From: Takakia lepidozioides
Taxonomy: Eukaryota > Plantae > Bryophyta
DNA length: 64,000 nucleotides
NCBI GenBank assembly: GCA_030704615.1
Contig: CM060732.1
Coordinates: 29,202,001 to 29,266,000, forward strand
Reading direction: 5' to 3'
The position numbers were made by a program, and so were the translations under genes. This document shows, in pieces, positions 5,886 through 63,945 of this stretch. The notes beneath the pieces are model-generated. The model searched no databases, was not told the DNA's origin, and saw nothing but the letters and a program-made list of their open reading frames with translations. The stretch's first letter is position 1, and each line of letters starts with the position of its first letter.

Positions 5886-5889
5886 TTAA

Positions 5890-8800: not shown

Positions 8801-11219
8801 AGTATGTTAGAGACAAATGCTCACGAATTAGCCAAAATCAATGATACTAGTATATGGATGAATAACTTTCTTGATGCTGATGTTGATGCAGAATCCATTC
8901 CACAATCATTAATAAGTAGTGCTGGGATAGAACCATATGACATAGCTACTGAATTTCATTTGCGCCCTGAAATTGGTTTATCGACAGTGCCTGATGCGAA
9001 TATTTCTTCTGCGTCTGATAACATTATTTCCACAACGGAGTTTTATGCACAACTATGAAAACTTAATATAGAACAACGTGGAATTTTCGATTATTGTATG
9101 TATAGAAAACATTTGTTTCCCAATAAACCTTTGCACTTGTTTTTAACAGGGGAGGCAGGAACCGGAAAAACATTTACTTTGTTGCTTATTATTCAAGGTT
9201 TATTGAGATTTTACAATAGACATCCACAATCTGACCCCCTTAAACAAAAAGCAATTCTCATGGCATATACTGGAAAGATTGCTTTCAATATACAATCCAT
9301 TCAGGACTAAGCATACCTCTTAATTGCAAAGATTTGCCATCGCTAGGTTCTGAACGATTAGACACATTAGTAAAAAAAATTGATGAACTACAACTTATGG
9401 TATTAGATGAAGTATCTCTTGTAGGTAATAGGATGCTTGCGTTTGCTGATCAACGATTGAGATCAATAAAACGAATTCATAATTCTTACTTTGATAATAT
9501 TAATGTTATTATCATTGGAGATTTCTACCAAGCACCGCTAGTACGAGATTCATGGGTTTTCAAAATGAAAAAATGAAGGTCATGATGCTATAGTACCTGG
9601 TTTTTGGCAAGATTGTATTAAATGTTACGAACTTAATCAAATAATGTGTCAATCAGACAATGAATTCATTATCGATTGCGAATTGCAACCGCAACTCAAT
9701 TTGATGTTGATACTATAAATCGACAATGTTGTCGTCCTGCTCCTAACAATCCAACATTTCTACATTTGTATTATACAAACAAATATATGTTAGTTCATAA
9801 TCACAAAGCATTTGAACAAACTAAAGGAAGTATATATATTTTTGAAGCTGTTGATGAACATAATGATACATGTCCATCCACTTTTAAGCTTTCAGATAAT
9901 GTAGCCAATAGAGCTGGCTTACATACAATCATTCGTGTGAAAGAAGAAATGTTGGTGGAGTTATGTGCAGGCAACTATGCAACACATGATGGTTTAGTAA
10001 ACGGAGCAGACGGTATATTTAAACATACTTCAATGTTAACAGATTCAACGCCTTTAATATGGATACAATTTAATAATCCAACATATGGTGTTGCTACACG
10101 TGCAAAAAATATTCATTTATATAGCTCAACGATAAATAAGTTATGGAGTCCAATTCAACCAATTACAAAAGAAATTCAAATAGGATCCAATACATCACAT
10201 ATAATTACAAGAACACAATTTCATATTCAATTAGCAGCTGCACGAACTATACATCGTTCACAAGGTTTAACTTTAGACTATTTGGTGTTTGATCCAACAT
10301 GAGTACATAAACATGGTTTAAGTTATACAGCTTTGTCTCGAATACGTAAAAAAGAAAATTTGTATCTCCTATCAAATTTACAATTATCAAATTTTCATGT
10401 TGATAATGGTGTGGTAGAAGAAATGCAAAGATTGAAAACAACAGCAAAATGGGAGTTGATCATTCCAACTTTAACCATATATACACAATCACATGTTCTT
10501 ATACAACATTTAAATACTAGATCGTTGTTATTACATAGAGAAGATGTATGTGCAAATCACAACTTACAAGCAGCTCATATTTTATGTTTTAATAAAACAC
10601 ATTTTAATCCAAAAACTTCTGACATAAACTTATTCATAGATACCAAAAAATATTCGCATGTGGCTGTTCATGGTAGCCATGGTACAATGCTATTATATGA
10701 CAAAACAGTATCGTTAACATCGTATGAAATATTTTCATCTTCTGGTGCTGAATATATAATGGCTACTTTCAACCAAAGTACAAGAAGAGCTATCCACATT
10801 ATTGTCATTTACAAACCTCCATCGCTTTCAATACCCACATTTTTATCTTTTTTACAAACAATTGTTGATAAGATGCCAAGTTTTTGCCCCACCATTATCA
10901 TGGATGATTTTAATATTAACATGCTAGAAAACAATTCATCAATGTCAAAGCAACTGTTACAATTTATGAAGACGATTAACATGACACTTCAATTTATGCA
11001 AGCTACTACAATATATGGTTCACAATTGGATCACATTTGGACAAATACACCAAACCAACAATGCATAGCTGGAGTTACATAAGCATATTGGACAGATCAC
11101 AAACCTTAGCTTTCAAGTTGCCTTTTCACGTTGTTAAATATCATCATTCACATTAGTGTTGCATTATATATTTTATATTGGAGGGTGGAGCCATTACGCG
11201 TCAAGCCGCTTGTTCTTGT
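5890..11219 (+). mobile_element. Decayed Helitron with C-terminal AP-endonuclease (Helentron-like)
   Basis: AT-rich block of fragmented ORFs: GYAPYGIRGSIINVP; Rep GPPTFFVTFTSAE, TEFQSRGGEHDHG, YCTSYLTK; PIF1 GEAGTGKT, LDEVSLV, GDFYQAP, GLVNG, ARTIHRSQGLTL; EN IYKPP, DDFN, LDHIW, TDH. Possible 3' end gcgtcaagccgc...cttgt at about 11219. Confidence 0.85.
6200..11100 (+). pseudogene. RepHel-EN polyprotein with many frameshifts and stops
   Basis: Eight consecutive plus-strand ORFs (6446 to 11082) are colinear pieces of one protein. Confidence 0.85.
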
Positions 11220-12014
11220 ATGGAACATTTATATTTTGGGCAGCCTGTAAATTTTCTTAAGCACCATAAGTTTAAATTCCCCATACACATGGCGAGTTTT
11301 CAGTTTGTCTTCGGCAACACCCTCTTGCATAGTACCTCATATAGGGGAGAGTTTGACTGCAATAAACACACAATCTAGAACAGACTTTCCGAAAGACATG
11401 CAGACTTGAACAAATGAATTGAGCTCAAAGTTCTTGTCCTGCAATCTAGTCCTCCCCCAAAAAAGCCAACTGAATGAAGCCTGCCAAGTCACGTGCCAAC
11501 ACTCTATTGTTCTCAAGGAAAAATTTGCGCACGGAGAATTTTCAGTGAATACTTCTCTTGTTACACAAGGTCATCAAATTACAAACATGTCTCTCTGATG
11601 TTTACAAACATCAGTCGTGATGTCAGACAGCACTTTACAGAAAGTCAAATGCGGTTTCTTTTTTTTGGGGGGGGGGAAGGGATCATGTTTTTGAGTATAA
11701 GACAACTTGTACTCAATAGGCCACCAAAATGCTGGAAGATAGGGCGCTCACATACACATAAAACTAGAACACACAAGCAAGTGGATGTGGCGTAAGAGAG
11801 CAGACGAATTGGAAGCCATAATCCCTCCTTGACCAAGTAACCTTCATACTTCCATGGGAGTGGGACTTGCACAACAGAGCGCTCCAACAAAGCCCTTCTA
11901 ATATACTTCTGACGGATAAAAAACCCGCCAGAGACAGATAAAGACACCTAAATCACTGTAGACAGACCATTCCTTTTCCCTCTCTCCCTTTTGGCTGGCT
12001 GCGTCTGCCTGTAG

Positions 12015-13881
12015 TCATGACTGGTCATCTTTAACAACCGACTGCTCATAATCACTCCGCCAATAATTGACATCGTTGAAATCTGGGTCACCAGTTGCGT
12101 TGTCATGTGAAGTGGGTTCAACCTCATTCTGAAGCTCCATATCATGGGCTAGCATGGGGCCTGCCTCCCCAACAACCCCCTCCTTCAGCATCTTTTCCAT
12201 TGCTTTAGCCGTCCCACCGGGCTCCACTCCTATGATTTCTCGGGCCCCAAACAATGGGTTGCTTATGTGCCTGTCGTTTGCAATTGAATCATGACAAATG
12301 TTTGCCTTAGAACTAGCAGCTGGTGATGGAGTCAACTCAGTACAGAGTGCCTCAGCATTGGCTGAAACCCTCGAGACCCCTTCTGTTGATGGAGTTGGGG
12401 TGTTCCAAGCTGGCTCCATCGACTCACTAAAGTGCACCTCAAATGGGTTTTTATCACCAAACAAACCTGAGTCTGATGTGCCCTCCAAGGCCCAGGGTGT
12501 CCCTCTCAACACAATCACCTCCTCAGGCAGAGACTTTGATGCAGATGAATGTGATTTTTGTTCTCCAGACTGGCAGGACAAAGACAGGTTGTCTGATAAC
12601 TTAGCTTTGTTGACCTCTGAAGCTGGCTCCTCTTCAACAGTACACGTGAGGGGCTGCTCTCCTTTCTCAACTGGCACTACCATACTGTGCTCCACTCCGT
12701 TTTCAAACTGATGTTCAGAAGCAAGCTTCAAAGGTGATAAATGACTTGAAGAGGTGGCCGTGTCAACCAGGTCGTCATCCTCCCCAACCACTACATCATC
12801 ACTCATGCTACTATTCGGTGAAGACACTGCCTCAGTGGCCTGTCCATCCTCTTTGTAGTTTAGGGGAGAAGACATAAGGAACATTGGTGAGTTTTGTGGT
12901 TTTGTCCTGTCACTATCATCTTGAAATGCAAACCAGTTGGAGTTTGCAGCATACATACTGTCTTTCAATCGTTCGCTGCTGCAAAGCCCATGTCCAACAT
13001 GGTCAGTATAGTAGCTATAGAGGGGGAAGTACAGTCAACTTCTAAATCTCACAGCCTGAAGCAATTCTATCACCTACAATTGAACCAAGACTCCAAAACC
13101 TATGAAGAAAAATGTTTGCTCAAGTCAATCCAGAGTTACAAAAGGACAGTCAAACTTAAATCGGAAATGTACGTGGATAAGGCAACATTGCAGCTTACCT
13201 GTCCTGTTCGTCACCAAGTTGCAAGGACGAAATTACCACTTCAGCTGACTCATCATCAAAGAAGACATCCTGCAACCAGGACTGATGCTTTGTATTGTCA
13301 AAAGGATTGGACAGGAATGAACGGTAAAATGCTAAATTGTTTTCTTACACAGTTCTGCCACAAATAGTGCTATGAGGATATTCTGTTGATATGATTCGGA
13401 AAGTCCCTACGGTTTTATCAATGGTTTTTCATAGGAGATATGAACTGAATAGGTGGGAGATGCTCTTTATTACCGCGGCTAGGGACAGTGTCTTCTCTGT
13501 CTTCGTAAGGCCACAAAAGGGTGCATTGCTCTGAAGTCAGGGCAATGAACCTAAGGGCCCTCCCACTCTGGGCACTCCACTGAAGTTCAAACTGAGTCTG
13601 AACAGCAAACAAACCCATTGGGAGAAAAAGAACCCATGTGCCCAATCTGTGGACATGATGGGAAGAGCAGCGTACATTTTCAGATGCAGTGCAGTGGGTA
13701 TCCTGCTGACAGCAAAGCCCTCTTCGCATTTATCACAAAGACCGCTCCTGAATGTCTCTTCCATAGATTTGGAATTCTGAGGTGATTTCTCCCATAAAAT
13801 CGATGCAATGGGATAAAGGCCTTTCTGGGGACAATCTGGAAGGCCAGAACCAAATTTACCTATGCGGGTAAGTCCCACTAC

Positions 13882-37026: not shown

Positions 37027-37098
37027 AGCCCTCGGCGAGAATCGAACTCGCGACCTTTCGCTTACGAAGCGAATGCACTACCACTATGCTACGAAGGC
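37027..37098 (-). tRNA. tRNA-Thr(CGT)
   Basis: GCCTTCGTAGCATAGTGGTAGTGCATTCGCTT-CGT-AAGCGAAAGGTCGCGAGTTCGATTCTCGCCGAGGGCT folds into a canonical cloverleaf. Confidence 0.95.
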
Positions 37099-37393: not shown

Positions 37394-37575
37394 ATCTTGG
37401 TGGCTTAATGCTAGCTTTTGACAATATTCATGTAAGTTCATCAAGGGCTCCATCCAAAGCCACACCACGAGAAACAAACAAACATCTTGGTGGCTTAATG
37501 CTAGCTTTTGACAATATTCATGTAAGTTCATCAAGGGCTCCATCCAAAGCCACACCACGAGAAACAAACAAACAT
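37394..37575. repeat. Perfect 90-bp tandem duplication
   Basis: atcttggtggcttaatgctag...gaaacaaacaaac at 37394 and 37484. Confidence 0.95.
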
Positions 37576-38989: not shown

Positions 38990-40518
38990 CTCCCTCTACT
39001 TTATGTTGTCTACAACATGAATAACTGTGCCCAGGGCTGCCAGGCTCGCACACACATTGCAAATGCACAAGAACATGATGTGATTTGGCTTCACCCATTT
39101 CCTGCATCATTTGCTCATAGGTCTCCATAGCCTCCATCCCACACCCATGCTGCTGTCATGGCACTCCAAGACACCACATTTCGTTTAGCCATATTGTCGA
39201 ACACTCCCTTCGCGTCTTCAATGCACCCACATTTGGCATACATATCCACCAGGGCACTGTTCGGAATGACATCTGGTACAATTCCAGCTTTGACAATGTC
39301 GCTATGAACCTCTCTGCCCTTCTCCAGGGCTACGAGGCTTGCACACACGTTGCAAACACCAACACACGTGATGTGGTCAGGCTTCACCCCTTCCCACATC
39401 ATTTGCTTGTAGGTCTCCATAGCCTCCATCCCGTGCCCCTGCTGTGCATATCCTGCGATCATGGCACTCCAAGCCTACCACACTCGTTTGGCCATATGGT
39501 CAAACACTCCCTCCACATCCTCGATGCACCCACATTTGGCATACATGTCCAATAGGGTATTGTTCAGAACCACAGCTGGAATTTGTTGAATGCTTCCGCA
39601 TCTTTTGCTCATAGGTCCCCAAAGCCTCCATCCCACACCCATGTTGGGCATATCCTGTGATCATCGCATTCCACGACACCACATCCCGTTCAGGACAAAT
39701 ACTCTCTTTGCAATCTTCATGCTCCCGCATTTCGCATACATGTCAACAAGGCTATTGTTCAAAATCAGATTTGGTACAAGTCCAGCTTTCATATGTCAGC
39801 ATGGACCTCTTTGCCGTTTTCCAGGGCTGCCAGTCTCGCACAAGCCTTGAGAATGCAAACAAATGTGACCTGATAGGGCACCCCTTGCTGTATCAGTTGA
39901 TCATATGTCTCGAAGGCATTCCTACCACAACCATGCTTGGTATATCCTGCCACCATATTGTTGAACACTAGACAGGCCTCCCTTACACTCCCATATTTGG
40001 CATACATGTTAACAAGGGCAGTCTCCCAATTAACGTATGACGAAATTCCAGCATGGATATCTTTGCCCTTCTCCAGGGCCACCATGCTGGCACCAACATT
40101 GAGAACACGAATGAAATGTGGCTTGCACAAGCATTACAAATGCACACAAACATGATGTGGTCGGGTTTCCCCCCTTCCCCCATCATGGACCTCTTTGCCC
40201 TTTTCCAGGGCTTCCAGGCTTGCACAAGCATTGCAAACGCTCACAAACATGATGTGGTTGCATTTCACCCCTTCCCCCATCATTTGCTCATAGGTCTGAT
40301 CCAAGGCCTCCATCCCGCGCCCCTGCTGTGCCTACCCTGCAAGCATGGCGTTCCATGACACCAAATCTCGTTCAGCCATATTGTTGAACACTCCCTCCGC
40401 ATCCTCAATGCTCCCACATTTGGTATACATGTCCACGAGGGTATTGTTCAGAATCACATCTGTACAGCTTTGGCGATGCAACCATGCACCTCTTTGCCCT
40501 TCTAGGGCTGCCAGGCTT
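38990..40518 (-). pseudogene. Degenerate PLS-class PPR repeat array (left part)
   Basis: Repeated SWNAMIAGYAQ-G-G-EAL, GVKPDHITFV, ALEKGKEVH and ALVDMYAKCG motifs, broken by frameshifts. Confidence 0.9.
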
Positions 40519-40949
40519 GGAGCGTAGCTACGGCGTGAGCCCAGCCCCGTGAGCCTGGGAGCTGAGCTCACATCCAAGCTAGAAAGCGTGAGCGGCACCA
40601 ATCTGCTGGAGAAGAAGGTCCTATAGGCGAGGATTGCAGGAAGAGGGCCTATTACCGTGGACAAAACAAAGGGGGCCAACACACACCATGTGTGCAATGC
40701 CCGCTCAAAAACAGAAATATGAAAACATGGCAGATTTGAGCTCAGAATGATTGTCACAGTTTATTTCAATTCACAGATAGACGCTTACAATGAATTGCAT
40801 GTGCATTTGCCCTGGTTCCGTAAACGAAATCCATATGTTTGTCAGAAATGCAAAGTCTTCACATGGCAACCTGCAAACCAGTATGGGAAGCGGGCATGGC
40901 TCGTATGTGTTCAAAGAGAAGTTGGCGGAGCTCCACGCGAGGTGTCCCG

Positions 40950-43900
40950 CTATAGAAGGGTGTTCACTTCTCCATAGCCTAGTGTGGCTTGGTGGATGAA
41001 TTGGTCTCTCTTACCGTCGCAACACATAATCACAAGGTATATGTAATATTGATGCTTGCAGGGGACCCACTTCCCTCTCATGCCGAGAGCGCCCTCACGC
41101 ATCGTTACAAAGTCCGGACAAGTGCACGAAGGGAAATTCCCGATGGTAACCTGATATTCTTTGCCATGAAGAACTGACCCAATTGACAGCACTGTGTAAA
41201 TCCGTCCATACCCCGGAGAAGGGATTTCGGTGATACGAGACACCCGAGCCTGCAAAATTAGCAGATTCCATCTTGCATTCGTGATCTGCACCCGAAGCGA
41301 AACGGCACACTGTTTTTCCATCTCTTTTTGTTGGGTGGGAGTCGGCACCGGGTGGCGGCATTGCCGGAGCATGTGGCACATCTGTGCCGACAATGCATGA
41401 GGGCACCACCCGGGACCGTGCAAGACAGAACCCTCCCTCCTCCAGCATGCTTATCTCGGTTGATGACAACGACGTCCCAATTTGCACAGGCCAAATTGCG
41501 GGGGGAGGGGGTTTCATTATCACCAAAGGACGAACTGTTCCCTTCACGCATTGTGCCATATCGTCTGGGCAGAACCAAAATTTGTGGTCCTTTGACTCCC
41601 CACTATGATAAGGTCGGAACAACCCTGTGAATGTTGGAGCTGGAGTCCCCCTGGAGCCTTTGCATATCTTTGATTTGCATTTCTTGAATGAGGGGGTCCG
41701 AATTGCCATGCAAGCCACTCTAGATCCTGGTGGGGTGCGTTCTATATGCCACTCACTATCAATGCAATCGGATTCCTGCACCATGGCCACCGCCTCCTCC
41801 AATGGGATTCCCGCTGCTGTGCTTGTATGTTTTGCACCTGCTCCACTGGAGGAGGACCCACCTGGGAAGGGGCGGGCACACGACTCAGTCTGCAGTGGAG
41901 ACACCTTTGGCACAGAGAAATTGACCCTGTCTGGCCGATGGGAATCTCCATCTGACCCTGGAAGAGTGTTCAATTTCCTTTTGCATGATCCAAATCTTTC
42001 CTCGCCTTCCAAATGGGGGATCCTGGATTGTAGAGCGGACCCTTCAGTGCATCTGTTTAGAGCTCTGGCCATCTTCGACGGGACTCCGGACCTACTCGCA
42101 GCCCTTAGCATCAACAAAGTCGTATCAGGGCCCTTGCCTCCACCCCGTCCCATCAGAAAATTGCGGTACCTGGTTTGTTGTGTAAGTGCACGCACCATGT
42201 CATCAGCAGTGGCCACATACAAGTCACGACCTGCTTTGGTAGACTGCTGCATCCAGGCGTTGTGAACAGTCTCCGCCAAATTACAGGATGGCATGTCGGC
42301 CAAGTCCTCCAAGGACATGTCCTGCAGAAGGCATTGCATGGATATGTGAGGAACAAAAACAAATGGTAGAGGTTCTTCAAGTGACAATCGAAGAACCCCA
42401 AATGAACAGGCACGATGCAAAATTTCTGTTTTTGGGATTGAAGAGGCTTACCGTCGTCATGAAAGCTCCCCACTGTCTGTACCTGAAGTGCCAGAAAACC
42501 AACCAATCCTCCAACTCCTTTACGTGGTACCTGTTGCAGCACCAGAGGAGAACCACCAAGCCCGGATTGCCTGGTAAGTGCTCTCAGCTTCTCCCATTGA
42601 GGTGGCATTCTTGTACTTGAGACAGAGCCTTCTGTGCTCCAACTGCAGGTCAGGGCGAATGCAGCGCTTTGTATGACGTGCCAGAGATTGAGTCCAATGG
42701 AAGAGGCATGTGCGCTCCCTATTTTCCATTGGGATCTTAGGATCCCCCGAACCAAACACGCGTCGCACTGCATTGAAATTTGCCTGTGCACTATCAGCCA
42801 TGAAGTCCGCAAAATTTGTGTTTTGTATTCCATTGCGCTGCATGACGGCCAAGAGCGAATTCCACATGAGCATTTGGGATTCAGTGTCCTCCGACTGCAT
42901 ATCACAAATTGCTATGGAGAGCACACGCTGGTACGCCGGATCATACACATGGCACGCCATGGTTGTCCAACCCTTCACCCGTTTGCAGTGATCAAACATT
43001 AACCAACATTTAGCCAAATCTCCTCCTGGTTGCATACGGCGGACAATGCTCACACCACTGCCTTCGCCCACAGCGGACATCTTGAACAAATACACCTTGG
43101 ACGAGCCCTGGCCAGGGAAGACACTGTTTTGAATGAATTCATAGCGACTCCTCCGCTTCAGGTCCATAATGTTGTCCATGAATCCAGTAGTGCCTGTGCC
43201 CATTCTGAGTGCATTCACCTGGTTTCGAATATTGGGAGAGCTCAACACGGAGAAATGGTCCATGACTGCATTAAGCGAATCTGCATCCAGCATAAGTTGT
43301 GTCGCATCCCCTTCACCCAGTATGTGTTTCTCCAGGAATGCCTTGCTAGCTGCAAGCGCTATAGCAGAAGGTGTTGCAGAAGGGGCATTGTGGAACTCCT
43401 GCTTCAGCAGATTTCTAGCGATGTCCACGCTATCCCTGCAACTTCCTTTGGACACAGGATGCTCGTGTGCACCCATATGAATGCAGGCACGAGTCATTGT
43501 CTTGCATCGGTGTGCCACCTGATATATACGAGCGTGGCACACAGAAACACAGGACGGGGAAAGTTTGCAGAACCTGCACACGAAAGTATTGGTCCTGGGA
43601 GGGGCAAGCCCTGGGGTGAAAGGATTCAGGGGCACACCTTCCCACTCACTTTTGTTTGGTTGAGCGTTGTTTCTCAGGCGAGGGCAAGAAATATTCTGGC
43701 ACTTACAATGCCCAACGCAGACCGACCTCCGAAATTTCAAGCCAATGTCGGTATGGATGTTCGACATTTTTGTCCTGCACCAAGGATGTCCGTCATGTTT
43801 CTTGTCCATGCCCTGTAAAAGCCCAGCCAGTCCAGTGGAAGAGGTGGGAGGGTTGAGCTCAAATAGGATGTCCCCATCAAACTGTGCTGGCATGTATTGA

Positions 43901-44484
43901 ACCCGTTGCATAGGAAGGGACTCCCAATCAACAAAATGCAGCTCGCTCTTGCACCCAGGCACACCTGCGAGGGCTTTCAATTTTGGAATGACACTCGTTA
44001 TCTCTTGCAATTCGTCATCATCCAATGACGGAGTCTGCACTGGCGGAGGAATCTCAGAAACATCCTCCGAGGACGAGTCTGAAAGAGTCACGAAGGTAGT
44101 GGATGTGCTCACCTCTTGTTTCACAGGAACTGTGCCCTTCTGTTGCACGACCGATGCTGCAGTGCCAGGGGTAACGACCGATCCTGCTGATTGTCTTCTC
44201 TCTTTTCCAAGGACACGGTATGTGCCTGGAAGGACTCTCCATTTCCTTCCACACTTGCCAACCAATGGTTTCTCCAAGTGCCCAGAATCCAAATTCCCAT
44301 CCTCGTCATACACCTCCTTTTGAACAAGGAGAGAACCCAACTCCAGCGGGAACAATGTAACCAGCTCATCCTCATGAACAACTGCAAACCCATCGTCGTC
44401 TGCAGTGGCAGTCAGTGGAAGAGTACCTGCATTGGAATGGAATCGAGCAAGTGTATCTCGCTCCCTCGACATGTTTTCCCTCAC
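40950..44484 (-). CDS. MULE-type DDE transposase with GCM-like N-terminal zinc domain and C-terminal SWIM finger (spliced; one frameshift at about 42535)
   Basis: DGHPW...CVGHCKC...CRFC...CHAR...GAHEHP (GCM-like); WLMFDH, FMADSAQA, RTCLFHW (CxxH), CNLAETVH (third acidic residue); last exon PSCTCPDF...VPCKH (SWIM). Confidence 0.8.
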
Positions 44485-45089
44485 TGAACGAAAGTTGCGG
44501 AATCCTCGAACTGATATCCCGCAATTACCGAAAGGGGAATTAAGACAAGCAAACCGAGGTCAACAAGGGTAGCTCCAATCCAAAGGTTGCAGGTGATGCA
44601 TGCAAAGGATGTAGGGATGAGATGCACCTTCACTTCGGAAACAGCAACGCCAAGAGGCACTAACCAGAAAAATTGTTTTGAAATACTACAAGAAGCCGTG
44701 CTGTTTATGGATGAAAACAAACACTGAAAACGACATGAAGCGAAAAGGGTCCCCGACAATTGGGGAGTCTTCTGGAGCAGCCAAGAAAAAGGTGAAATCT
44801 TTAAGACCCACATTTGTGTTTCGTTGCTGATATGAATATAGCCCACACAGGACATCTGCACCAAGCTGAAAGCACTGCAAACTTGAAGCCCAAATAGTGT
44901 GCGGCAACGCACACTGTTTGGGCCTACCAATTTGGTTGATTGTTCAGGTGCGAAACGCCCAAACTTGGGCACTACAGCAGGTTCAATACAACCCAAATTG
45001 CAAGCTCAATCAGAGACAGTTGAGCTGAACATTTCACTGCTGTTTCCGTCTCGATATCGGTTTTCCAGGATATGTATGTCCGGACGACA

Positions 45090-47040
45090 GAACCCTTCAG
45101 TGGCAGCTCAAACAGTGTGCGTTGGCGCACACTGTTTGAGCTCTACATGTGACGATTTTGTCCGTGTTGAATTCGCCCTTTAGGGCACGTTTATGATGAC
45201 GAAATAACCATTCAGTGGCAGCTCAAACAGTGTGCGTTGGCGCACACTGTTTGAGCTGAACATGTAAGTGTTTTTTCCGATTGAAATTCGGACTTCCAGG
45301 GCAAGTTTATGATGATGAAATAACCATTCAATGGCAGCTCAAACAGTGTGCGCCAACGCACACTGTTTGAGCAGAACATGTCACTGCTTTTTTGGTGTTA
45401 AATTCGGACTTCCAAGGCAAGTTTATGATGATGAAATAACCATTCAGTGGCAGCTCAAACAGTGTGCGCCAACGCACACTGTTTGAGCTGAACATGTAAG
45501 TGTTTTTTCCGATTGAAATTCGGCATTTAGGGCACGTTTCTGAAGATGAAATAATCCCTCACGGGCAGCTCAAACAGTGTGCGCCAACGCACACTGTTTG
45601 AGCTGTACATGTCACTGCTTTTTTGGTGTTAAATTTGGACTTCCAGGGCAGGTTTATGATGATGAAATAACCATTCAGTGGCAGCTCAAACAGTGTGCGT
45701 TGGCGCACACTGTTTGAGCTGAACATGTAAGTGTTTTTTCAGATTGAAATTCGGCATTTAGGGCACGTTTCTGAGGATGAAATTATCCCTCACTGGCAGC
45801 TCAAACAGTGTGCGCCAACGCACACTGTTTGAGCTGTACATGTCTGCGCTTTTTTGGTGTTAAATTCGGACTTCCAGGGCACGTTTATGATGATGAAATA
45901 ACCATTCAGTGGCAGCTCAAACAGTGTGCGTTGGCGCACTCTGTTTGAGCTGAACATGTAAGTGTTTTTTCAGATTGAAATTCGGCATTTAGGGCACGTT
46001 TCTGAGGATGAAATAATCCCTCACTGGCAGCTCAAACAGTGTGCGCCAAGGCACAGTGTTTGAGTTGTACATGTCACTGCTTTTTTGGTGTTAAATTCGG
46101 ACTTCCAGGGCAGGTTTATGATGATGAAATAACCATTCAGTGGCAGCTCAAACAGTGTGCGCCAACGCACACTGTTTGAGCTGTACATGTCACTGCTTTT
46201 TTGGTGTTAAATTCGGACTTCCAGGGCAGGTTTATGATGATGAAATAACCATTCAGTGGCAGCTCAAACAGTGTGCGCCAACGCACACTGTTTGAGCTGA
46301 ACATGTAAGTGTTTTTTCCGATTGAAATTCGGACTTCCAGGGCAGGTTTATGATGATGAAATAACCATTCAGTGGCAGCTCAAACAGTGTGCGCCAACGC
46401 ACACTGTTTGAGCTGTACATGTCACTGCTTTTTTGGTGTTAAATTCGGACTTCCAGGGCAGGTTTATGATGATGAAATAACCATTCAGTGGCAGCTCAAA
46501 CAGTGTGCGCCAACGCACACTGTTTGAGCTGAACATGTAAGTGTTTTTTCCGATTGAAATTCGGACTTCCAGGGCAGGTTTATGATGATGAAATAACCAT
46601 TCAGTGGCAGCTCAAACAGTGTGCGTTGGCGCACACTGTTTGAGCTGAACATGTAAGTGTTTTTTCCGATTGAAATTCGGCATTTAGGGCACGTTTCTGA
46701 GGATGAAATAATCCCTCACTGGCAATTCAAACAGTGTGCGTCAACGCACACTGTTTGAGCTGTACATGTCACACTGTTCGAACTCACCTTTTCACTTTTT
46801 TCATCCAAATCGGCCGCATATCTTGGAGTTTACAATGAACACTTACCTGGCACAAGTAGATGTTCAATGATCATTTACATGGCAAGTGAAACAATGTGCG
46901 TCAACGCACACTGTTTGAGCCCACTTTTACATTGTCTATTTCTGTGGAATTCGGCAACATAGGACATGTCTGTGAGGGTCAATGTACACTTACCTGGCAG
47001 CTTAAAATACTGTGCGTCAACGCACACTCTTTGAGCCCAC
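45090..47040. repeat. Tandem array of about 17 x 115-116-bp units, each with the 40-bp palindrome CAGCTCAAACAGTGTGCG-(TTGG/CCAA)-CGCACACTGTTTGAGCTG
   Basis: Palindromes start at 45104, 45219, 45335, 45451, 45566, 45682, 45797, 45913, 46028, 46144, 46260, 46376, 46492, 46608 and 46723; degenerate copies at about 46883, 46998 and 44889. Confidence 0.97.
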
Positions 47041-47110
47041 TTTTTCATGCCTAAGCCGACGTTTCATGCCTCTCTAATATCAAGTTGAATGAACAACCCT
47101 GCAGGAGAAG

Positions 47111-50100
47111 ATGCAAAGTGTGGCAGATGAGGTCCCTTCGGGTCAGGAGAAGGAGATAATTGTTGATGTGGACGATGAGTTCTATGAAAGCAAAGCCGCT
47201 GAGATGCTGGGGGGTCAGAAGGTAAACTCTCAGCTTGTGGTGCAAAGTATGCTTGCCCTGGGTGGGAGGTTGAAGATTCCCCTGTGTAGGTTGGTTTCCA
47301 TGCCCGTCGTTCGTACACCCCTCGTCAAGGACATTCTCAAGCTGGAGGCCGAGTTTGTGCATGGGTATTTGGATGGATCCGCAGTCTTTTACGTTTCTAC
47401 TAGGGATTCCAAAGGTAATGAGCTCCTCGTGGATCAGTCAATCGTGGACTCCTGGGACCCCATTTGGAGACAGCTGAACGAATCCTTCGAACTTCTTCTC
47501 TCCAGGAAACCTTCCACCCATGCATTCTTGGGAAAGATGTTTCACGTTTGGGATGGGAACCACCGCTTGCTTGCATGGATGGCTGTCATTGGGAGGCTGC
47601 ACTCACAGGAGGAAGAGTGGCATTACTCTGTTCGATCGATGGTGCTGGATTGTGACGGGAACATGATGGGTCTTCTGACGGCAATGAATGATGTGAACAG
47701 GTTGGTTTCTCATTCTACATGTTCCACTTGTGGTTCCGTTCTTCTTTGATTGAAGACCTTGAATTTCATTCTGACTTACAGATATCATTCTGCAGAGGAA
47801 CGGAGACATCGCATGTCAAAATGAGTTTGGTTCACACATTGTATAGGATACAAAGGATAGGGCAGATGCCCTTGACCAACTTCAAGACCATCCTTTCAGC
47901 AGAGATGTACAAGAAGTGCGAAAGCTCCAAGACATCGGAAACGTGGTACTCGTTGACCCGTGAGGCTTTCATGGAGTACATGTACACGGTGAGATACATC
48001 TTCCTTCATCTGGTCTTCCATATTCCACATGTTAGTTTCTGTTTGTTTCCCTTGACCTTGTGCTGATGCAACTCTCTTGCATTCCCTTGCAGCAAGACAT
48101 TGCAGATGCAGGGGAGCGTGGCAAACTGGAATACTACAGCTCTACCCCTGAGGAGAGAAGGACAGCAAAGGGGGTTGAGAGTCGCATCCAGAAAGAGATG
48201 ACCGCTACAAGAAGGACTATAATGAGTGCTTTCGTGAAGCAGTTGAGAATTGCCGACCCATCATTCGGACCGCAGTTTCTCCTGGAGATAAAAAAACCAT
48301 TATAACAAGCCAGGCAAGCCAGAAATGACCCAGGAGAAGTTGCACAGGCTGTCTACCGCCGTTGTGTCTCCAGAACAAAAGGTGAAGTGGCTGCAGATAT
48401 GGAACTCCGATCCCACAGTTAGGGATACCCACATGTTCCCAAGGTCGGAGAAAGAGAAGAAGACCCAGCGTGTCATTCCTGTCAGTGACAATGTGCTGGA
48501 CACCTGGCTTCACAAGGCCACTTACTGGAGCCAGGTGTGATGTCCTTCCCTGTGTCACTGTCTTTTCTCTTTTCCTGTCCTTATCTTTCTATTGCCTCTT
48601 ACATTCGCTGTGATTGCTTTTGGTTTCATTCTTGCATTTGTATTGTTTTGCAGTTGGAAGAAAGGGCCAGATCGGTTCTGCATACTCAACTGGCTGACTA
48701 TGGCATCAGTATGATAGCACCAAAGGTGTCCTTCAAGCATACATGAGGAAATGGAGAGCCACAGTGTGGCACTCTTGTTTCTTTAGAGAGTTCAGCAAGG
48801 AGGGTGGCATCAGTCGAACAAATGAGCTGGACCAGCAAGAAAAAGGAGAGGAAGCCTGGAAACGATGCCTTTACAGGTGCACACTCTTGCACTACTTATT
48901 TGTGCTGTGGTTGCAATGTGTTGTGTGGCATACTGTTTAAGGGGGTCTTCCTGGTGTGATGGAAAAGTTGCCACACAATATTTCCATTGTAAAATGAGGC
49001 TGTCTCTGTTGCTGCAGGTACATAAAGTTTGTTCTCCTGGAAGAGAATTGCCTGGACAAACATCCAGATTTCGTGGACCTGTGGCTTGTCCCTGCTGGCA
49101 ACCAGACCATGTTCACTACTGGGATCTTGCATGACTGGGGCCCATACCATCTTTCTTCTTGTGGTTGGTATTTGGATTGCCCTCCTTCTGAGACCCCAGC
49201 TCCAGAGGTGTCTTTGAGGAGAGAGAATGACCGTATTGCAGCCACTGCCGCAGCAGCCGACCTCGACATTCATGAACGAAATTTGAGGACTCTTGCAGAG
49301 AAGGAGCCTCCCGCTCACAATACCCCAGGTAGAGGAAGAAAGGCAAAGGGAAAAGATGTTGCTGGTGTTGTGGGGAAGGGAAGGGGTAGAGGGAAGGTGA
49401 CACAAGGGCAGGGAAGTGTTGTAGATATTGGCCCTGTGGAGCATGTCCAGCAGACTCCACCGCATGGTAGGGGATCCGGGAGAAAAAACAAGGGGGTGGT
49501 TGATCCCAAGGACCCGTACCATGCAGTGGAACATCCCACGAGGGTCATTCGCCCAACCAGGTTGGAGATGGCCAACGTCGGGTTCCTTGCCATGATGGAG
49601 TCGAAGAAATCTGATTACAAGGGCGAGCCATCACCAGTGTGGGACAGGATTGTGCAGTTCCTCAGCACGGTGCGTGTTCTCTTTGGGTTCTGTGGCTTCT
49701 GTTGTTTTTGTCTGCTGTGGGCATGGATCGTTTCTAAACTTGTGAGAATTCCATTGTATTTTTGTTTGCAGGCTAAAATGACCAAATCCTGGGTGAACGG
49801 GAAGGAGAAGCCATATGCAGCCGAACTCATCATCTTGGACATCCCTGATGGGTTGGCAGTCCCGGATATCCCTCCATCGGGTGCTTGTCCGGGTTGGAAT
49901 GCTTTTGATGAGCGCTACTAGCGGTGGGTTTTCTCCTTTTGCAACTTCTTCCTGTCCGATGCAGGTATTTTGGTGCTCATCCAGTCCATCGACGGTCGGT
50001 GTCGCCGTGCACTTTCCAACTATTTGAAAGCCTCGGGCATGAGAGTCGTGAAGACATGGAATTGTGTGAACAGCATGTACCTTACGAAGGGGGATCGCCC

Positions 50101-50832
50101 GGGAGAGATGGTGAGTTTGCCTTCTTCTTCCTCTTCTTGGTTGTTCTCCGATGGGGTTGTATAGGTCGCTCGAACTCATATGTAGGGGCCCGATTTTTTT
50201 TTGCTTCTTAATTCCTTGTGGATGTCATGTTCGCAGACTCGTCTGTTTGAAGCTGTTTGTCTCGTCCGGGTGCATCCACAAATGACTCCGGCCGGCATTA
50301 CCGAGTTTGCCATCACTCATGGGGCCAAGTTCATAGATGACAGGACAGATCCCCCCACGGATGACATGCATCACAACTACGTCGACAGCAACGTGTGCTT
50401 GCGAAGGGGGGATGGGGTTCTTTGGAGAGGGGCGAGGGAGAGGAGTCCGGCTTTCATTCAAACGATTGTGGAGTGCTGCACCTACACAGACGCCAGAGTT
50501 CTGGATTTGTCGATGGGCACAGGTTCATCTCTTCAACATTCACATTTCATGAGGTTTGATTGAGCTTGCACTTTCAGCACTTCCCACCGTTCCGAATGTG
50601 TCTTCAATGTCTTCTTCATTCATTCTATTCCACTGCAGGTGCTTCTTACCACGCTTGCAAGGCCAGTGCGCGACATGTCTTTGGGATTGAAGGGGATGCT
50701 GAGATTTACAAGAACCTCCTGATGGGTTTGGGTGGACACACTTCTCAAGTCCTTCCGAAGCCCCGTCCCGTTGATACTGATACAGAGGAGACTTCTGACA
50801 AGGAGCTGGACTCCGACTTTGCCTGTGAGTAA
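47111..50832 (+). CDS. ParB/Srx-like domain + beta-class N6A/N4C DNA methyltransferase-like fusion, 8 exons, mildly disabled
   Basis: Approximate exons 47111-47700, 47796-47988, 48093-48534, 48654-48875, 49018-49669, 49772-50110, 50237-50522, 50639-50832. ParB motifs FHVWDGNHRLLAW (GxxRxxA) and MNDVNR. MTase AELIILDIPDG (motif IV position), then ERSPAFIQTIVECCT...VLDLSMGTGASYHACKASARHVFGIEGDAEIY (motifs X-I-II). Frameshifts at about 48295 and 48730; TGG>TAG at 49919. Confidence 0.75.
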
Positions 50833-51579
50833 GTTCAACCTATGCATGCTTTCATTGTTGTTTCAATATCGAGAGTCGCTGTTCTTCAGGCAAAGTGCAC
50901 ATGGGAGACATCCTCTTTGTTGGACTTGTGCATTGCATCATTGTGTTAAAAATGGGGTTTTGTGGACATGTGCAGGAGTCCGCGTGCTTCCACTTGCCCT
51001 CCAGGGCTATCACACCTATTTGGACTTGTTTGCAGTCCTCCTCGGTCTTGCGTGCTACCTGTCTATGCGGAGGCACTCGCAGCAAGCATGTCCGTTCATG
51101 GCACTCCGAGTCCACCTTACGACGGCCTTCGTAGAACACGTGGTGTTGGGGCCAGAATCTTTGTAGTTGACATAGCACAGGAGGTGGACACTGATTGTGA
51201 TGACTGCGACACTTGATATGAAGTTTTCTTTTGGTTTAATTCTAGGCCAAATTTGAAATGGGATGGTTGTGTGTCCTTGTTGTCCTGTTTGCAATGTGTG
51301 CGTGGAATTCACATTCATGGTTACAAACTATTGTTGGAGATGGGGGTTGCATGGACTGCCTGGATTGTTCCTTCAATCTATTTGATGTTTTGTGGACCTC
51401 ACAGACTGGAGTACATTGCGAAAACAAACAAACCACTTTGGTTCGTGTAGAGCATTCTCGCATCATTTGCTAGTTGGTCCCCAAACTATTCCTGCTAGAA
51501 GAATGGTTGGTGAATCCATCACGGTGAAGTCCACCTCATCAAAAACTGTTCAGGCATTCTCAATTCTACCCACATCAAC

Positions 51580-51729
51580 CCGCGGAAATAGGTGACACCA
51601 CTCGGAAATAGGTGACATCCGCGGAAATAGGCACTGTTTGCATGCTGACGTGGCGTGAGCCTGTGCTGGGCTCACGCTTTCCTGGGCTCACAGGCTCACG
51701 CCTCCGGGCTCACGGAATAGCACCCCCCC
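51580..51729. repeat. Right subterminal repeats and TIR of the Mutator-like element
   Basis: (cc)gcggaaataggtgaca x3, followed by clustered GTGAGC/GCTCAC motifs. Confidence 0.8.
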
Positions 51730-53930
51730 CCAGGCTTGCACACGCACACAAACGTGATGTGGTCGCGCTTCACCCCTTCCCCCATCATTTGCTCATAGGT
51801 CTCCAAGTCCTCCATCCCACACCCTACTGTGCATATCCTGCAAGCATCACGTTCCACGACAACAAATCTCGTTCAGCCATATTGTTGAACCCTCCCTCTG
51901 CATCCTCAATGCTCCCACATTTGGCATACATGTCCACCAGGGCAGTGTTCAGGATCACACCTGGTACAGTTCCAGCTTTGGCGATGCAACCATGCACCTC
52001 TTTGCCCATTTCCAGGGCTGCCAGGCTTGCACACGCATTGCAAATGCACACAAACGTGATGTGGTCGGGCTTCACCCCTTCCCCCATCATTTGCTCATAG
52101 GTCTCCAAAGCCTCCATCCCACGCCCCTGCTGTGCATACCCTGCAAGCATCGCGTTCCACAACACCACATCTTGTTCAGCCATTTGAAAACTCCCTTCGC
52201 ATCCTTCATGCACCCACATTTGGCATACATGTCCACCAAGGTAGTGTTCAAGATGACATCTGGTACAAATCCAGCTTTGACGATGTCACCATGGACCTCT
52301 TTTCCCTTTTCCAGAGCTCCTAGGCTTGCACACGCATTGCAAACACCAACAAATGTGTTGCGGTTGGGCTTCACCCCTTCACACATCAATTGCTCATAGG
52401 TCTCCAAAGCCTCCATCCTGCATCCTTGCTATGCATATCTTGCAATCATTGCACTCCACGACACCACATCTCATTCAGCCATACTGTCGAACACTCCCTT
52501 TGCATCCTTGATGCACTCACATTTGACATACATGTCCAGCAGGGCAGTGTTCAGAATGACATCGGGTACAATTCCAGATTTGACGATGTCACCATGGACC
52601 TCTTTGCACCTTTCCAGGGCTGCCAGGCTTGCACACGCATTGCCAATGCAAACAAACGTTATGCGGTTGGGCTTCACCCCTTCGCACATCATTTGCTCAG
52701 AGGTCTCCAAAGCCTCCATCTCGCGCCCTTGCTGTGCATATCCTGCAATCATTGCACTCCACGACACCACATCTCATTCAGCCATACTGTCAAACACTCC
52801 CTTCATACATGTCCACGAGGGTATTGTTCAGAATGACACTCGGTTCAATTGCAGCTCTGACAATGTCGCCATGGACCTCTTTCGCCCTTTTCCAGAGCTG
52901 CCAGGCTTGCACATGCATCGCAAATGCACACAAATGTGATATGGTCGGGCTTCACCCCTTCCCCCATCATTTGATCATAGGTCTCCAAAGCCTTCATACC
53001 ACGTCCTTGCTGTGCATACCCTGCATGAATCCACTCTTGGCGTGAATCCACTTTGGATAATGTGAGTGTGCACCTGCTTTCCAGCTTCCAGACCTTTCAT
53101 CTTGATGCACTTAAGCAAGAGACAGACAAACGTATCTGAATTTGCTGAAATGCCTCCTACATTTGGCATACATGTCCACGAGGGTATTGTTCATAATCAC
53201 ATCTGGTACAATTCTTGCTTTCGCGATGCAACCATGCACCTCTTTGCCCTTTTCCAGGGCTGCCAGGCTTGCAAACACACAGACGTGGTGTGGTCGGGCT
53301 TCACCCCTTCCACCATCCAAAGCCTCCATCCCACGCCCCTGTTGTGCATAAGCATGGCGTTCCGCGGCACCACAGTTCATTCAACCACATTGTTGAACAC
53401 TGTTATCTGTTTTTGGATACTTTCCTACTGCCACATTGGCAGTTACTTGTCAAAGTCATTCCACCCAGACAATCTTCTCAGCTCAGCATGGATTTCCTTA
53501 ATTCTGGGATGCAACTTGTCATCTACAATGAAGGTGTGCACCCTGTTGCCAACCTCAATGCAGCAGCGACCTGGCTCCTAGCTCCTTTCTAACCCCTCTA
53601 ACCGTGATCATTCTTCTCACCTTTGCAGTATCATCCCACCTGCCAGCTGCGGCATAGATGTTTGATAGCAACACATAAGTCGTGCCATTTCCACATTGCC
53701 ATGGATTCTGTAGGCACCAAGCAAGGCCTTCCACACCACAACATCTGGATTTCAGTAGGCCAGTGTGGCTGCATGCAGAGAGAACACATATAAAGGTGAC
53801 ACTATCCGGCTTCAAGTCGTTCTTTCGCATTCCTTCAAATAGTTGCAGGACCTTGACAACCATGTTGGGCATATCCTGTGATCATCGCATTCCACGACAC
53901 CACATTTCATTCAGCCACATTGTCAATTTA
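51730..53930 (-). pseudogene. Degenerate PLS-class PPR array (right part), including an E-domain fragment
   Basis: Many P/L/S motifs; YVLLSNIYAAAGRWDDTAKVRRMITVRGVRKELGARS (E domain) at about 53570-53680; multiple frameshifts. Confidence 0.9.
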
Positions 53931-55503: not shown

Positions 55504-58253
55504 TTGGTGGCGATCATCACTTTACAGAGTAATGTAGTTGGTGTTGTAGTTCAATAGATTCAGGAAGGAAGGCAGACAGGCAGGCAAGTATACGTTTCAC
55601 GACGAAAGTGATGATCGGTGCCGACTGTCACCTTTGCCATTGCTATATGTAAGCCTAGAAGGCCAATTTGATGGTGATGCAAGAGTGCCAGGGAACTTAA
55701 GTCGCATCTTGCAATGACGTAGAAGCGATGATCGGTGGCGATCATCGCTTTCAGGTCCATTCCCGTTTTGTTCAGACCAGTTTGGCAATGGCGTGGTTCT
55801 TCAGGAAAGTGATGATTGGTGCCGACCATCACATTCAGACCTCATGGGTTGTGCATCCCAGGGCAGTCTGATTGTGATGATTGGTACCGATCATCACTTT
55901 TTGAACTGATTGGGCACTACACCAGAATCCAAAAGAGGAGACCAACCCTTTGCAAACTGAAAAGTATTAGGATGTAAGAGGTCCAGGCAATTCATAGGAG
56001 GAATAGCAGTGACACAAAAGCGATGATCGGTGGCGATCATCGCTTCCAGGTCTATTCCTTCGCTAAAAAGCTCAGTGATTGAAAGAAGGGTTTCTGCAGA
56101 AAAGTGATGATCGGTGCCGACCATCACATTCAGACCTCATGGGTGTGTGCATCCTAGGGCTGTCTTGTTGTGATGATCAGTACCGATCATCATCTTTATG
56201 ATTCCAAATGTGATTTGAAGCTTTAGGGTATATCGTTTTCAAGCACAATCCAGCCTGGCACAAAGGTCGAGGGAATAAGTGACATTGTTTTTTTATCACT
56301 GGCTTCACAAGGCCACATTTTGGAGTCAGGTATTTGTTGATTGAAGTGCCTATTGTATATCAATTATCCTATGACTTTGTCATGTGCAGTTCTGATAGAT
56401 GTTCTCTTTGCAGCTGGAGAAACGTGCCATTCTTGTCCTGGAGCAGAATTTGAAGGACTTGAATATTTCGATGGACTCACCACCACAGATGACCTTGGAG
56501 GCGTACATTAGAAAGTGGAAAGGTCTCACATGGCGATACTCTTTCTTCCGCGAGTTCCAAGGATGGTAACATATTGAGGTCGAACGATTTCGACAGTCAA
56601 GTTGGAGGGGAGTGGGCTATGATGCGTGTTGTGTACAGGTGCAGTACCTAAAGCCTATCCATCACATTCTTTCAAATTCTGTCATGCCTCAATTGAGAAA
56701 ACCTTAATATTTTCTTTCTGCTACTCAACAATTTGGTGATGGTCGGTACCGATCATCACTTCCAGTGCTCTGAGCTTCTCCCGTCAAACAAATAAATACT
56801 GCAAATCATGTCCATGTTACATCCTACCTCCGTTAACATAGGCAATTTGCTTCTGATCAGTGATCTGTTGATCGGTGCTGATCATCAGATTTCCCAATTG
56901 TGCAGTGTAGATAATTATAAGGATTTGCACACCCATGTTGCATTCTCTCTGATGTGAAAGTGATGATCGCCACCGATCATCACATTCTGCTACTTTTTGA
57001 TATCTTGTTTTGGGGGATGGTGTTTGTTTGAGTGTCCGCAGGTACACTAAATATGTGTTGATGGAAGGAAAATACCTGAGTGGAATCCCAGATTACTTGG
57101 ACATGTGGTCGGGCCCTGCCAACGATCCCACAATGTACACAGCTGGTATCTTGAGGGATTGGAGTCCTGCCTACTTTAGGGACTGTGGATGGTACCTCGA
57201 CTGCCCTCCTGAGCACACGATATTTCAAGAGCAACAAATGAAGTATTTGAACGACGAAGAGTACCAGAGGAACATAGCTTCTTGGCCGCCAAGGTGCCAA
57301 ACGCGCAGGCAACTCCCCAGAAAGGCAAGAAGGGGGCCGCAAGGTGAAAGACAAGGATGCAAAGGCTTCGGAGGGAGTAGCCAAGTCACCTGGGAAGACA
57401 AAGGAGAAAGAGAAGTCGAAGGAGAAGGAGAAGGAGAAGGAGAAGGGGAAGGAGAAAGAAAAATAAAAATAAAAAGAGAAGGATAAAGAGAAGGACAAAG
57501 AGAAAGACGAGACAACTGCGAGGTACACCCGCACTATTGAATGCATTTTCGATGCCAAGCCACACCCTTCCCGTGCGGACTTGGCAAGGCAGATCAAGAT
57601 TGTCAATGAGGGATGGCTGGCGATGATGGAGACTCGGAGAAAAGGGTACTCGGGGGTGCCATCACCGACTTGGGATAACATGATTTCTTTTCTTAATCTG
57701 GTAAGAATCTTCCTCTTCAAATTGGGACATTCGAAATTGTCAATGCCAATGTAGATGTTGGTTTCTGTTGAGACCCTCATTTTTCTTTGTTTTTAAATTG
57801 GACCTGTATGCTGCAGGTGAGCACTGGTCCTTCATTCGTATGCGGTGTTCAAAAAACCTTTGCCGCTGACATGGTCATCCTTGACATCCCCGACGGCCAG
57901 CCTGTCCCCGATGTTCCTCCAAAGGGAAAGACTCCATTCTGAACAGTTTCGATGAGAACTACTGGAGTTGGGTATTCGGGTTCTGCAATAATTTCCTTTT
58001 AGATGCAGGAACGCTTTTGCTCTTCCAGTCATGTGACAAAGATAGTCGTCGGGGACTGGCATCATACCTGAAGTTGTCTGGGTTTGAAGTTTTGAGGACA
58101 TGGAATTGTGTGAACATCCTCTACCTTCTGAAAGGTGGTTGCCCTGGACAGCTAGTATGGCACCGCCCTCCTTAGTATTGTTTCCCAATGTCTTCTTGTT
58201 ATTTCTGCTGGCTTGCTCTACCACCATTTGTGATGATCGGCACCGATCATCAC
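55504..58253. repeat. About 12 copies of the 24-bp palindrome GYGATGATCG-N4-CGATCATCRC
   Basis: Copies at about 55504, 55608, 55726, 55809, 55874, 56020, 56104, 56170, 56736, 56866, 56960 and 58230; includes a 294-bp higher-order duplication. Confidence 0.9.
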
Positions 58254-58610
58254 AAATACATTCCATTGTAGTTTTCATTTGCAGTCCATGTTTTATTCCT
58301 TCCTGCGCCAAACTTCCTCCAATATTTCCATGTCTCACCCCAACCTTGCATCTTTGCCAGACGAGGATGTTTGAGGCAATCTGCCTGAGGAGGATTCACA
58401 CCTCCAAAACACCATCTTCCGTCCACAACTTTGAAATTTCCGACCAAGGGTGTTTCATCAACCCCCCTTATGAACCGCATGTGGATGACATGCTCTACAA
58501 CTTCATGCACTCCAGTCAGATTATCAAAAGACCAGTTGGGTTTTCATGGAGAGGTGCAAGGGAGAGAACCCCAGCGTTCATGCAGACACTCTTAGAGTCA
58601 TGCAACCACC
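56285..58610 (+). pseudogene. Paralog of the ParB-MTase gene (exons 3-7), truncated
   Basis: WLHKATFWSQ, AYIRKWK..W...FFREF, GILRDW...CGWYLDCPP, WLAMME...PSPTWD, ADMVILDIPDG, TWNCVN, WRGARERTPAFMQTLLESC; intron positions match 47111-50832. Confidence 0.85.
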
Positions 58611-63529: not shown

Positions 63530-63945
63530 CAAATGTCATTATGAACACTGCCCTGGCAGCTCTGGAAAAAGGGGAAAGAGGTCCATGGCGACAGTCTGAA
63601 CCATACCCTGGTGGACATGTATGCGAAATGAAGGGCAAGAGGTGCATGGGGATATCATCAAAGCTGGAATTGTGCCAAATGTCAATCTGAACACTACCCT
63701 GGCAGCTTAGGGGAAAGAGGTCCATGGCGACATCTTCAGAGTTGGAATTGTACCAGATGTCATCCTGAACAAAACCCTGGTGAACATGTTTACAAAATGT
63801 GGGTGCATCTAGGATGCAAAGGGAGTGTTCGACACTATGGCTGAACGAGATGTGGTGTCGTGGAGTGCGATGCTTGCATGGTATGCACGGCAGGGACGTG
63901 GGATGGAGGCTTTGGAGAGCTATGAGCAAATGATGGGGGAAGGGG
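63530..63945 (+). pseudogene. Degenerate PPR fragments, opposite orientation to the main PPR array
   Basis: LAALEKGKEVHGD, LVNMFTKCGCI*DAKGVFDTMAERDVVSWSAML. Confidence 0.8.

Follow-up and report, generated by a model that had tools for sequence, protein, structure and literature searches.

Inverted palindrome centres in a satellite-like repeat of a putative Mutator-like transposon: probable origin by spacer inversion and dimer duplication

Palindromes in a 116-bp tandem repeat inside a putative Mutator-like transposon carry one of two reverse-complementary 4-nt centres, TTGG or CCAA, on flanks that keep their orientation. Our overall reading, which we regard as probable though by no means secure, is that the repeat is satellite-like, that a mutation inverted the spacer between the palindrome arms and that the result was spread by dimer duplication and subsequently reshuffled. 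It looks like an ordinary, already described type of mutation in an interesting host element, with no sign of ongoing or programmed flipping. The features on which this account draws are listed by their positions in the window, that is, the whole stretch of 64,000 nucleotides that was analysed; loops are taken as the positions from core start +15 to +18.

40520–51733: putative Mutator-like DNA transposon of ~11.2 kb that encloses the array, recognised by an interrupted 303-bp repeat, a duplication and inverted end motifs
42523–44559, minus strand: 679-codon open frame, candidate MULE-type transposase (relatives and ESM-Atlas clusters)
44889–44922: u0, an isolated diverged palindrome upstream of the array, loop GCAA
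45091–46772: 116-bp tandem array (231-bp dimer), units u1–u15, one 18-4-18 palindrome per unit, loops TTGG, CCAA or TCAA
TTGG loops: u1 45122, u2 45237, u6 45700, u8 45931, u14 46626
CCAA loops: u3 45353, u4 45469, u5 45584, u7 45815, u9 46046, u10 46162, u11 46278, u12 46394, u13 46510
TCAA loops: u15 46741, u16 46901, u17 47017
46886–46919: u16, degenerate palindrome, loop TCAA, three arm mismatches
47002–47035: u17, degenerate palindrome, loop TCAA, with the ATG of the ParB-like frame 76 nt downstream
47093–47746, plus strand: coding exon 1 of a ParB/Srx-like gene, start codon at 47111 (motif VWDGNHRLxAW, AF2 model)

Anatomy of the array and copy number of its units

Tandem Repeats Finder describes the array at 45091–46772 as 14.5 copies of a 116-bp period, and a higher-order period of 231 bp scores better (7.2 copies, 90% matches). 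Each unit contains a 40-bp palindrome with 18-bp arms and a 4-nt centre; the stem, CAGCTCAAACAGTGTGCG / CGCACACTGTTTGAGCTG, has no mismatch in 12 of the 14 core units, and the right arms of u8 and u9 have one or two changes. The palindrome CTCAAACAGTGTGCG-NNNN-CGCACACTGTTTGAG is present in 18 copies at 44889–47035, with a chance expectation of 0, and a search for AACAGTGTGCGNNNNCGCACACTGTT allowing up to 3 mismatches likewise returned 18 matches, every one within 44893–47031, where 100 shuffles gave an expectation of 0. An earlier note on this DNA had assigned TTGG, CCAA and TCAA loops to individual units and had described 75-bp spacers that never invert; the pattern search returned identical assignments and also the copy u0, which the note does not list, and in the alignment the inter-stem spacers, 75–76 nt long, have the same orientation in all units. 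As single-stranded DNA, the hairpin folds with −23.8 to −23.9 kcal/mol in either loop form (z about −9). Between u0 and u1, at 45003–45033, there is a decayed unit whose palindrome centre is gone (AGCTCAA-TCAGAGACAG-TTGAGCT); it is a centre deletion, the type of damage to which hairpins are prone.

The sequencing data consist of Logan contigs, about 100 nt long within the repeat and placed at 90% likeness. The array bins collect thousands of contigs and the word depth reaches 3x10^5, compared to about 2,800–12,600 in the lowest-depth neighbouring bins, indicating that the unit family is present at satellite copy number. The bin of u0 (44882–44975) has a word depth of 266,162 in X1 next to bins of about 2,800–12,600, and spacer-like sequence precedes other copies of the u0-type palindrome (loop GCAA, arms CCCAAATAGTGTGCG), implying that u0 belongs to a separate high-copy sister array subfamily elsewhere in the genome. 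Contigs matching at 99% or more number 2190 in X1 and 47 in X5 and come from four runs in two studies. Among the 40 best-supported differences, outside which there are 25 further ones, none falls on the loop except one A>T at 46164; within this best-supported set, the result weakly suggests that TTGG on one of the two spacer backgrounds, the B type defined below, is rare genome-wide.

These contigs also bear on the question of whether the two loop states could have been created during assembly or polishing at a hairpin-forming repeat. Palindromic tandem repeats are difficult to assemble and no placed contig covers the whole stretch, but placing a read on the wrong strand cannot flip the loop without flipping its flanks, and the contigs of at least 99% match, from four runs and two studies (2190 and 47 as above), add no loop site to the listed differences beyond the A>T just mentioned. 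We therefore give an artefact almost no probability. Searches for further copies of the family were negative in the collections covered: a pattern scan of metagenomes gave only one unrelated high-GC bacterial palindrome, palindrome scans of viral and prokaryote genomes gave 0 matches, a word search with a 55-aa frame spanning one unit found no match, and an exact-protein look-up of a 212-aa ORF found none either.

Origin and inheritance of the two loop orientations

At 0.46 pairwise differences per site, the loop varies more than any other part of the unit; the spacers have 0.13–0.16, the right arm 0.04 and the left arm 0.00. All four loop sites vary, as against 30 of about 112 sites outside the loop. 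CCAA and TTGG differ by four changes, all of them transitions and perfectly linked, whereas the variable sites outside the loop comprise 10 transitions and 20 transversions. Of the 16 loop haplotypes that these four sites could form, the units bearing CCAA or TTGG show just these 2, which are exact reverse complements of each other, as the earlier note had stated. In addition, u13 (CCAA) and u14 (TTGG) match without a single difference across 110 flanking nt, 59 nt on the left side of the loop and 51 nt on its right. Given the variability of the loop, the linkage of its reverse-complementary states, the exclusive transitions amid a transversion-rich surrounding and the identical backgrounds of u13 and u14, the two forms are, judged from their sequences, almost certainly related by inversion of the 4-nt spacer with the flanks fixed, rather than by substitution.

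Such an inversion would be expected where near-perfect arms of about 9 bp or more enclose a short spacer, and the array offers 18-bp arms and a 4-nt spacer. It would leave exact reverse-complement states on unchanged flanks, which is the relation of CCAA to TTGG, and it would appear as a multinucleotide change beyond the local substitution process, as do the four linked transitions (4/4) set against the 10:20 spectrum. In the mechanism that we propose, polymerase template switching between the arms, or equivalently an exchange between them, would invert the 4-nt spacer, and the same template switching would keep the arms identical. The earlier note had named template switching among several possible sources of flip isomers; it is a documented cause and sufficient for the CCAA/TTGG pair.

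Without any inversion, the two forms might have decayed from a centre that was symmetric (CCGG, or the TCGA that relatives suggest) through strand-symmetric C>T deamination of methylated cytosines. Consistent with this, all four differences between CCAA and TTGG are transitions, and other palindromes, discussed below, have centres for which the simplest reading is that a central CpG has decayed: those of a second element in the window (TG in 6 copies, TA in 3, CA in 2) and those of a related contig, L006 (TCAA, TTGA and TTAA, with a co-oriented arm asymmetry). For the array itself, the route would require two unmixed hits on each strand, four in all, but the 18 copies lack any intermediate (CCGG, CTGG, CCAG, CTAG or TCGG), the CpGs adjacent to the loop are intact in 17 of the 18, transversions dominate the local spectrum, and u13 and u14, which differ in the loop alone, are left unexplained. 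Moreover, TCAA and GCAA have the AA half in common with CCAA, which suggests an xCAA rather than a CCGG ancestor. With intermediates missing and a transversion-rich local spectrum, we rejected CCGG deamination as the origin of the array loops and regard decay without inversion as unlikely, while granting it some merit for the 2-nt centres.

The spacer halves fall into two deep types each: the half that follows a palindrome is A or B, and the half leading up to the next palindrome is x or y. CCAA is the loop in all six B-type units and the TTGG-B combination is absent among the array units, TTGG being limited to A-type units and the diverged edge unit u1. The run from u5 to u9, in which CCAA and TTGG take turns (C-T-C-T-C), consists of copies of one dimer, x-TTGG-A-y-CCAA-B. 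Accordingly, u6-7 and u8-9 both have TTGG followed by CCAA; all 9 sites at which they differ lie outside the loops, and a derived CG>CA site is common to both. Further along, u10-11 and u12-13 are identical at 232 of 232 positions. Because u5–u9 are copies of one dimer and u10-11 equals u12-13, the alternation appears to have been mostly inherited through duplication of the 231-bp dimer. According to the proposed scheme, a dimer with TTGG in the A slot and CCAA in the B slot would have been duplicated, producing the apparent alternation, and unequal crossover or short gene conversion would then have reshuffled the dimers.

The earlier note had singled out perfect co-segregation of loop state with spacer haplotype as the sign of one ancient inversion followed by duplication. 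We find discordance instead: u2 (TTGG) shares one haplotype with u11 and u13 (CCAA), and u14 (TTGG) likewise with u4 (CCAA). The units u2 and u11-12 (CCAA) differ at 10 of 232 sites, of which 4 are the loop, and u4-5 (CCAA) and u6-7 (TTGG) differ at 13 of 231, again with 4 in the loop. Both dimer classes (A then x, A then y) hold both orientations, in copies that are 2.6–3.9% diverged, and in a four-gamete view the loop forms three combinations with A/B, three with the left x/y and four with the downstream x/y. The unit u3 resembles an A/B recombinant directly beside the stem. The few discordances need one or two extra events, each of which could be an unequal crossover or a short conversion, processes that build arrays anyway.

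A neighbour-joining tree of the flanks requires 3 loop changes, compared to a mean of 4.3 with shuffled labels (P=0.13), a comparison made among the units of this array and confounded by recombination within it; since 3 changes are not significantly fewer than with shuffled labels, clustering by descent is weak. Taken at face value, the rate of switching per hairpin would be about 15 times the substitution rate per site, as expected of a template-switch hot spot. The earlier note had also suggested looking for independent switching; the discordances leave room for it without demonstrating it, because one inversion with crossover or conversion fits the 3 changes as well as 2–3 inversions do. 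The event count would be equal for one inversion with two unequal crossovers or short conversions and for two inversions with one crossover, and crossovers are needed in any case, since both A-x and A-y junctions exist. We estimate at least one and at most about three inversions in the history of these 15 units, with the chances of one event and of two or more roughly even.

A more active process can be envisaged, in which cruciform extrusion, or nicking and resolution by a protein of the element or the host, switches the loops frequently, possibly in somatic cells, in the course of replication, recombination or protein loading. The 3 loop changes on the flank tree, the loop difference between the otherwise identical neighbours u13 and u14, the high stability of the hairpin and the hairpin-type damage of the unit at about 45003–45033, which has lost its palindrome centre, would all agree with frequent switching. 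Against it, the identical dimers of u10–13 show zero switching since their duplication, TTGG is missing from all B-type units, 1–3 events suffice for the pattern, the element showed no gene of HUH/Rep or resolvase-like type, and the hairpins are internal rather than terminal. Taking these together, we consider active switching very unlikely. The earlier note's proposal of recombination or replication sites at which cruciforms are extruded or processing takes place thus gains no support, dimer duplication explaining u5–u9 and TTGG being found on A-type units only. Its analogy to parvovirus and poxvirus termini fails on position, the hairpins lying about 4.6 kb or more from the element ends, and was rejected.

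The host element and its ParB/Srx-like gene

A 303-bp PPR-type (PLS-like) host-gene repeat breaks off at 40519 and continues from 51736 without a change of orientation, the junctions carry a direct duplication, (C)CAGGCTTG, of 8–9 bp, and inverted CGTGAGCC subterminal motifs are found at both element ends; together, the interrupted repeat, the duplication and the end motifs place the array inside an ~11.2-kb insertion with an 8–9 bp target duplication. The array is internal, about 4.6 kb and 5.0 kb from the element ends at 40520 and 51733, and lies between the transposase gene and the ParB/Srx-like gene. The stretches of PPR-type repeat that flank the insertion cover 39031–40519 and 51736–53400, and an additional inverted copy of the 303-bp repeat is found at 63709–63945. 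Elsewhere in the window there are a tRNA gene at 37027–37098 on the minus strand (Rfam, 70 bits), a perfect 90-bp tandem duplication beside it (37394–37575) and, at 2200–2846, two arrays of 11–12-bp units built on CCACTAGT with higher-order periods of 33–57 bp.

Pfam and PDB sequence searches with all frames flanking the array, the transposase and ParB-like frames included, were blank. The frame at 42523–44559 has relatives with 41–55% identity across 94% of its length, and its nearest ESM-Atlas clusters carry PF10551 MULE (score 0.93). It is a candidate transposase, resembling MULE transposases by language-model features only; its AF2 model (pLDDT 51.9, pTM 0.25) is too poor for a structure search. 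The array palindrome is absent from the transposase relatives L001 and L002. We rejected the palindromes as transposase-binding subterminal repeats, as the element ends bear a different motif, CGTGAGCC.

On the other side of the array, the first exon of the ParB/Srx-like gene encodes the motif VWDGNHRLxAW, which is invariant in an alignment with 4 relatives, DGNHR being invariant in 5 relatives. The core of its AF2 model has a pLDDT of 60–92. An exhaustive PDB structure search with VIA over 48,161 representatives returned 10 chains with Z of at least 2. Each of the first 8 is of ParB/Srx fold; they include KorB (Z 5.1), PadC (4.9), sulfiredoxin (4.1), pNOB8 ParB-N (3.9), SerK and SbnI. Foldseek with the same model gave no match at E≤0.001. 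With a best Z of 5.1, a modest match, we have moderate confidence that the exon encodes a ParB/Srx fold, as modelled.

Several relatives of this gene have palindromes of their own. The Logan contig L006, whose ParB-like exon is 61% identical, has four in positions 1–314, the last one 91 nt upstream of the gene, of the form AACCTTGCG-(TCAA/TTGA/TTAA/TCAA)-CGC(G/A)AGGTT; the inner core TGCG-TCAA-CGCA is common to L006 and units u15–17. Among the L006 centres, TCAA and TTGA are reverse complements, but the arm mismatch stays on one side, a pattern that speaks for a TCGA centre decaying at its CpG or for a flip restricted to the innermost bases. In L004 and L005 the gene is preceded, at a distance of 53 nt, by a different palindrome, and no palindrome was found in the 177 and 448 nt of upstream DNA of L007 and L008. 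The palindromes of the array are plausibly binding sites of the element's ParB-like protein. The earlier note had listed protein loading among the possible roles of the sites, and this part of it gains support from the adjacent ParB/Srx-like gene and the relatives' own palindromes; the flips lend it none.

If the palindromes served a dimeric ParB-like protein, the two orientations might be interchangeable: on duplex DNA, inverting the centre would present a symmetric dimer with the same site rotated by 180 degrees. With both orientations equivalent to such a dimer, a flip would be neutral and could persist, and the arms would be maintained by selection or by template-switch homogenisation. A stronger role, in which ParB-like loading or associated nicking drives cruciform extrusion and hence above-background, perhaps somatic, loop switching, seems to us highly improbable; if true, each unit would be a two-state heritable mark within a eukaryotic transposon.

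A second, diverged element at 55608–58254 shows 35–60% aa identity to the gene part at 48.5–50.8 kb. In this element (about 55.6–58.3 kb), 11 copies of GTGATGATCGG-NN-CCGATCATCAC are dispersed in the non-coding stretches of the homologous gene region; their TG, TA and CA centres, counted above, are most simply explained by central CpG decay and not by flips. No ParB-like exon was found there at E<1e-3. Plus-strand frames downstream of the ParB-like exon position contain SPPY at 51109 in the first element and NPPY at 58460 in the second, motifs that, as sequence, are compatible with an amino-methyltransferase part.

Related systems and significance

The closest likeness is to template-switch spacer inversion of the Ripley quasipalindrome type. 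In both, perfect arms of more than 9 bp enclose a spacer of 2–5 nt that is reverse-complemented with unchanged flanks; in both, the arms are kept identical. Yeast nuclear genes show spacer inversions of 2–5 bp between arms over 9 bp that are recurrent and reversible, with homogenised arms (PMC8604942), and template switching at inverted repeats has been described in human (PMC5453318) and in the maintenance of hairpins (PMC8794818). The present case differs from these in that the target occurs ~15x in tandem within a transposon, where one event can be multiplied by duplication and blurred by unequal crossover. Hairpin-loop microinversions of plastids, e.g. in the trnH-psbA spacer (PMC2903610), resemble the array in their short loops on palindromic stems. 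They flip repeatedly even within species, misleading haplotype trees, and they are single-copy and lie in organelle spacers, whereas the array is nuclear, transposon-borne and tandemly repeated.

Parvovirus and poxvirus hairpins form the termini of linear replicons, where they flip in each round of replication, via hairpin transfer or nicking, which produces equimolar mixtures. They share with the array two reverse-complementary isomers of a hairpin tip, but here the hairpins lie in internal chromosomal DNA and the assembly shows one state per unit.

For the combination of gene and array, the nearest counterpart is found in red-algal Plavaka elements of the CACTA type, whose PAG3 has a ParB-like N-terminal domain and adjoins tandem inverted-repeat arrays proposed to be self-binding sites (bioRxiv 10.1101/2025.02.11.637652). 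The present element also bears a ParB-like gene adjoining tandem inverted repeats, and differs in its superfamily (probably Mutator-like, with an 8–9 bp target duplication), its fusion partner and its host genome, which is land-plant-type to judge by the PPR-type repeat at the insertion. Both sides of the PAG3-type design are seen here: a domain of predicted ParB/Srx fold (Z 5.1, DGNHR invariant) is encoded beside the array, and multiple inverted repeats beside the gene differ among relatives (the array, L006 and L004/L005, with none in L007/L008). The Plavaka preprint (10.1101/2025.02.11.637652) is silent on loop orientation. The bacterial pairs ParB-parS, KorB-OB and Noc-NBS resemble the element in having an N-terminal domain of ParB/Srx fold that contains a GxxR-type box (DGNHR in this element), along with palindromic sites that often occur in several copies; the likeness draws on predicted fold and motif, and the bacterial sites are 16-bp perfect palindromes with no asymmetric spacer, unlike the 18-4-18 arrangement of the array.

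The array provides a clean case, of textbook quality, for inverted-repeat spacers inverting in nuclear DNA, multiplied here by tandem repetition. For haplotyping or dating of satellites, the four loop sites should count as a single character or be masked. Biologically, the setting is the more interesting part: a Mutator-like transposon combines a ParB/Srx-like gene with perfect palindromes, and relatives with the same gene have different palindromes. That both loop orientations are tolerated while the arms are near-invariant is what a symmetric dimer site would predict. These features suggest that eukaryotic transposons harbour co-evolving protein-site pairs, an arrangement that until now has been proposed only for the red-algal Plavaka elements.
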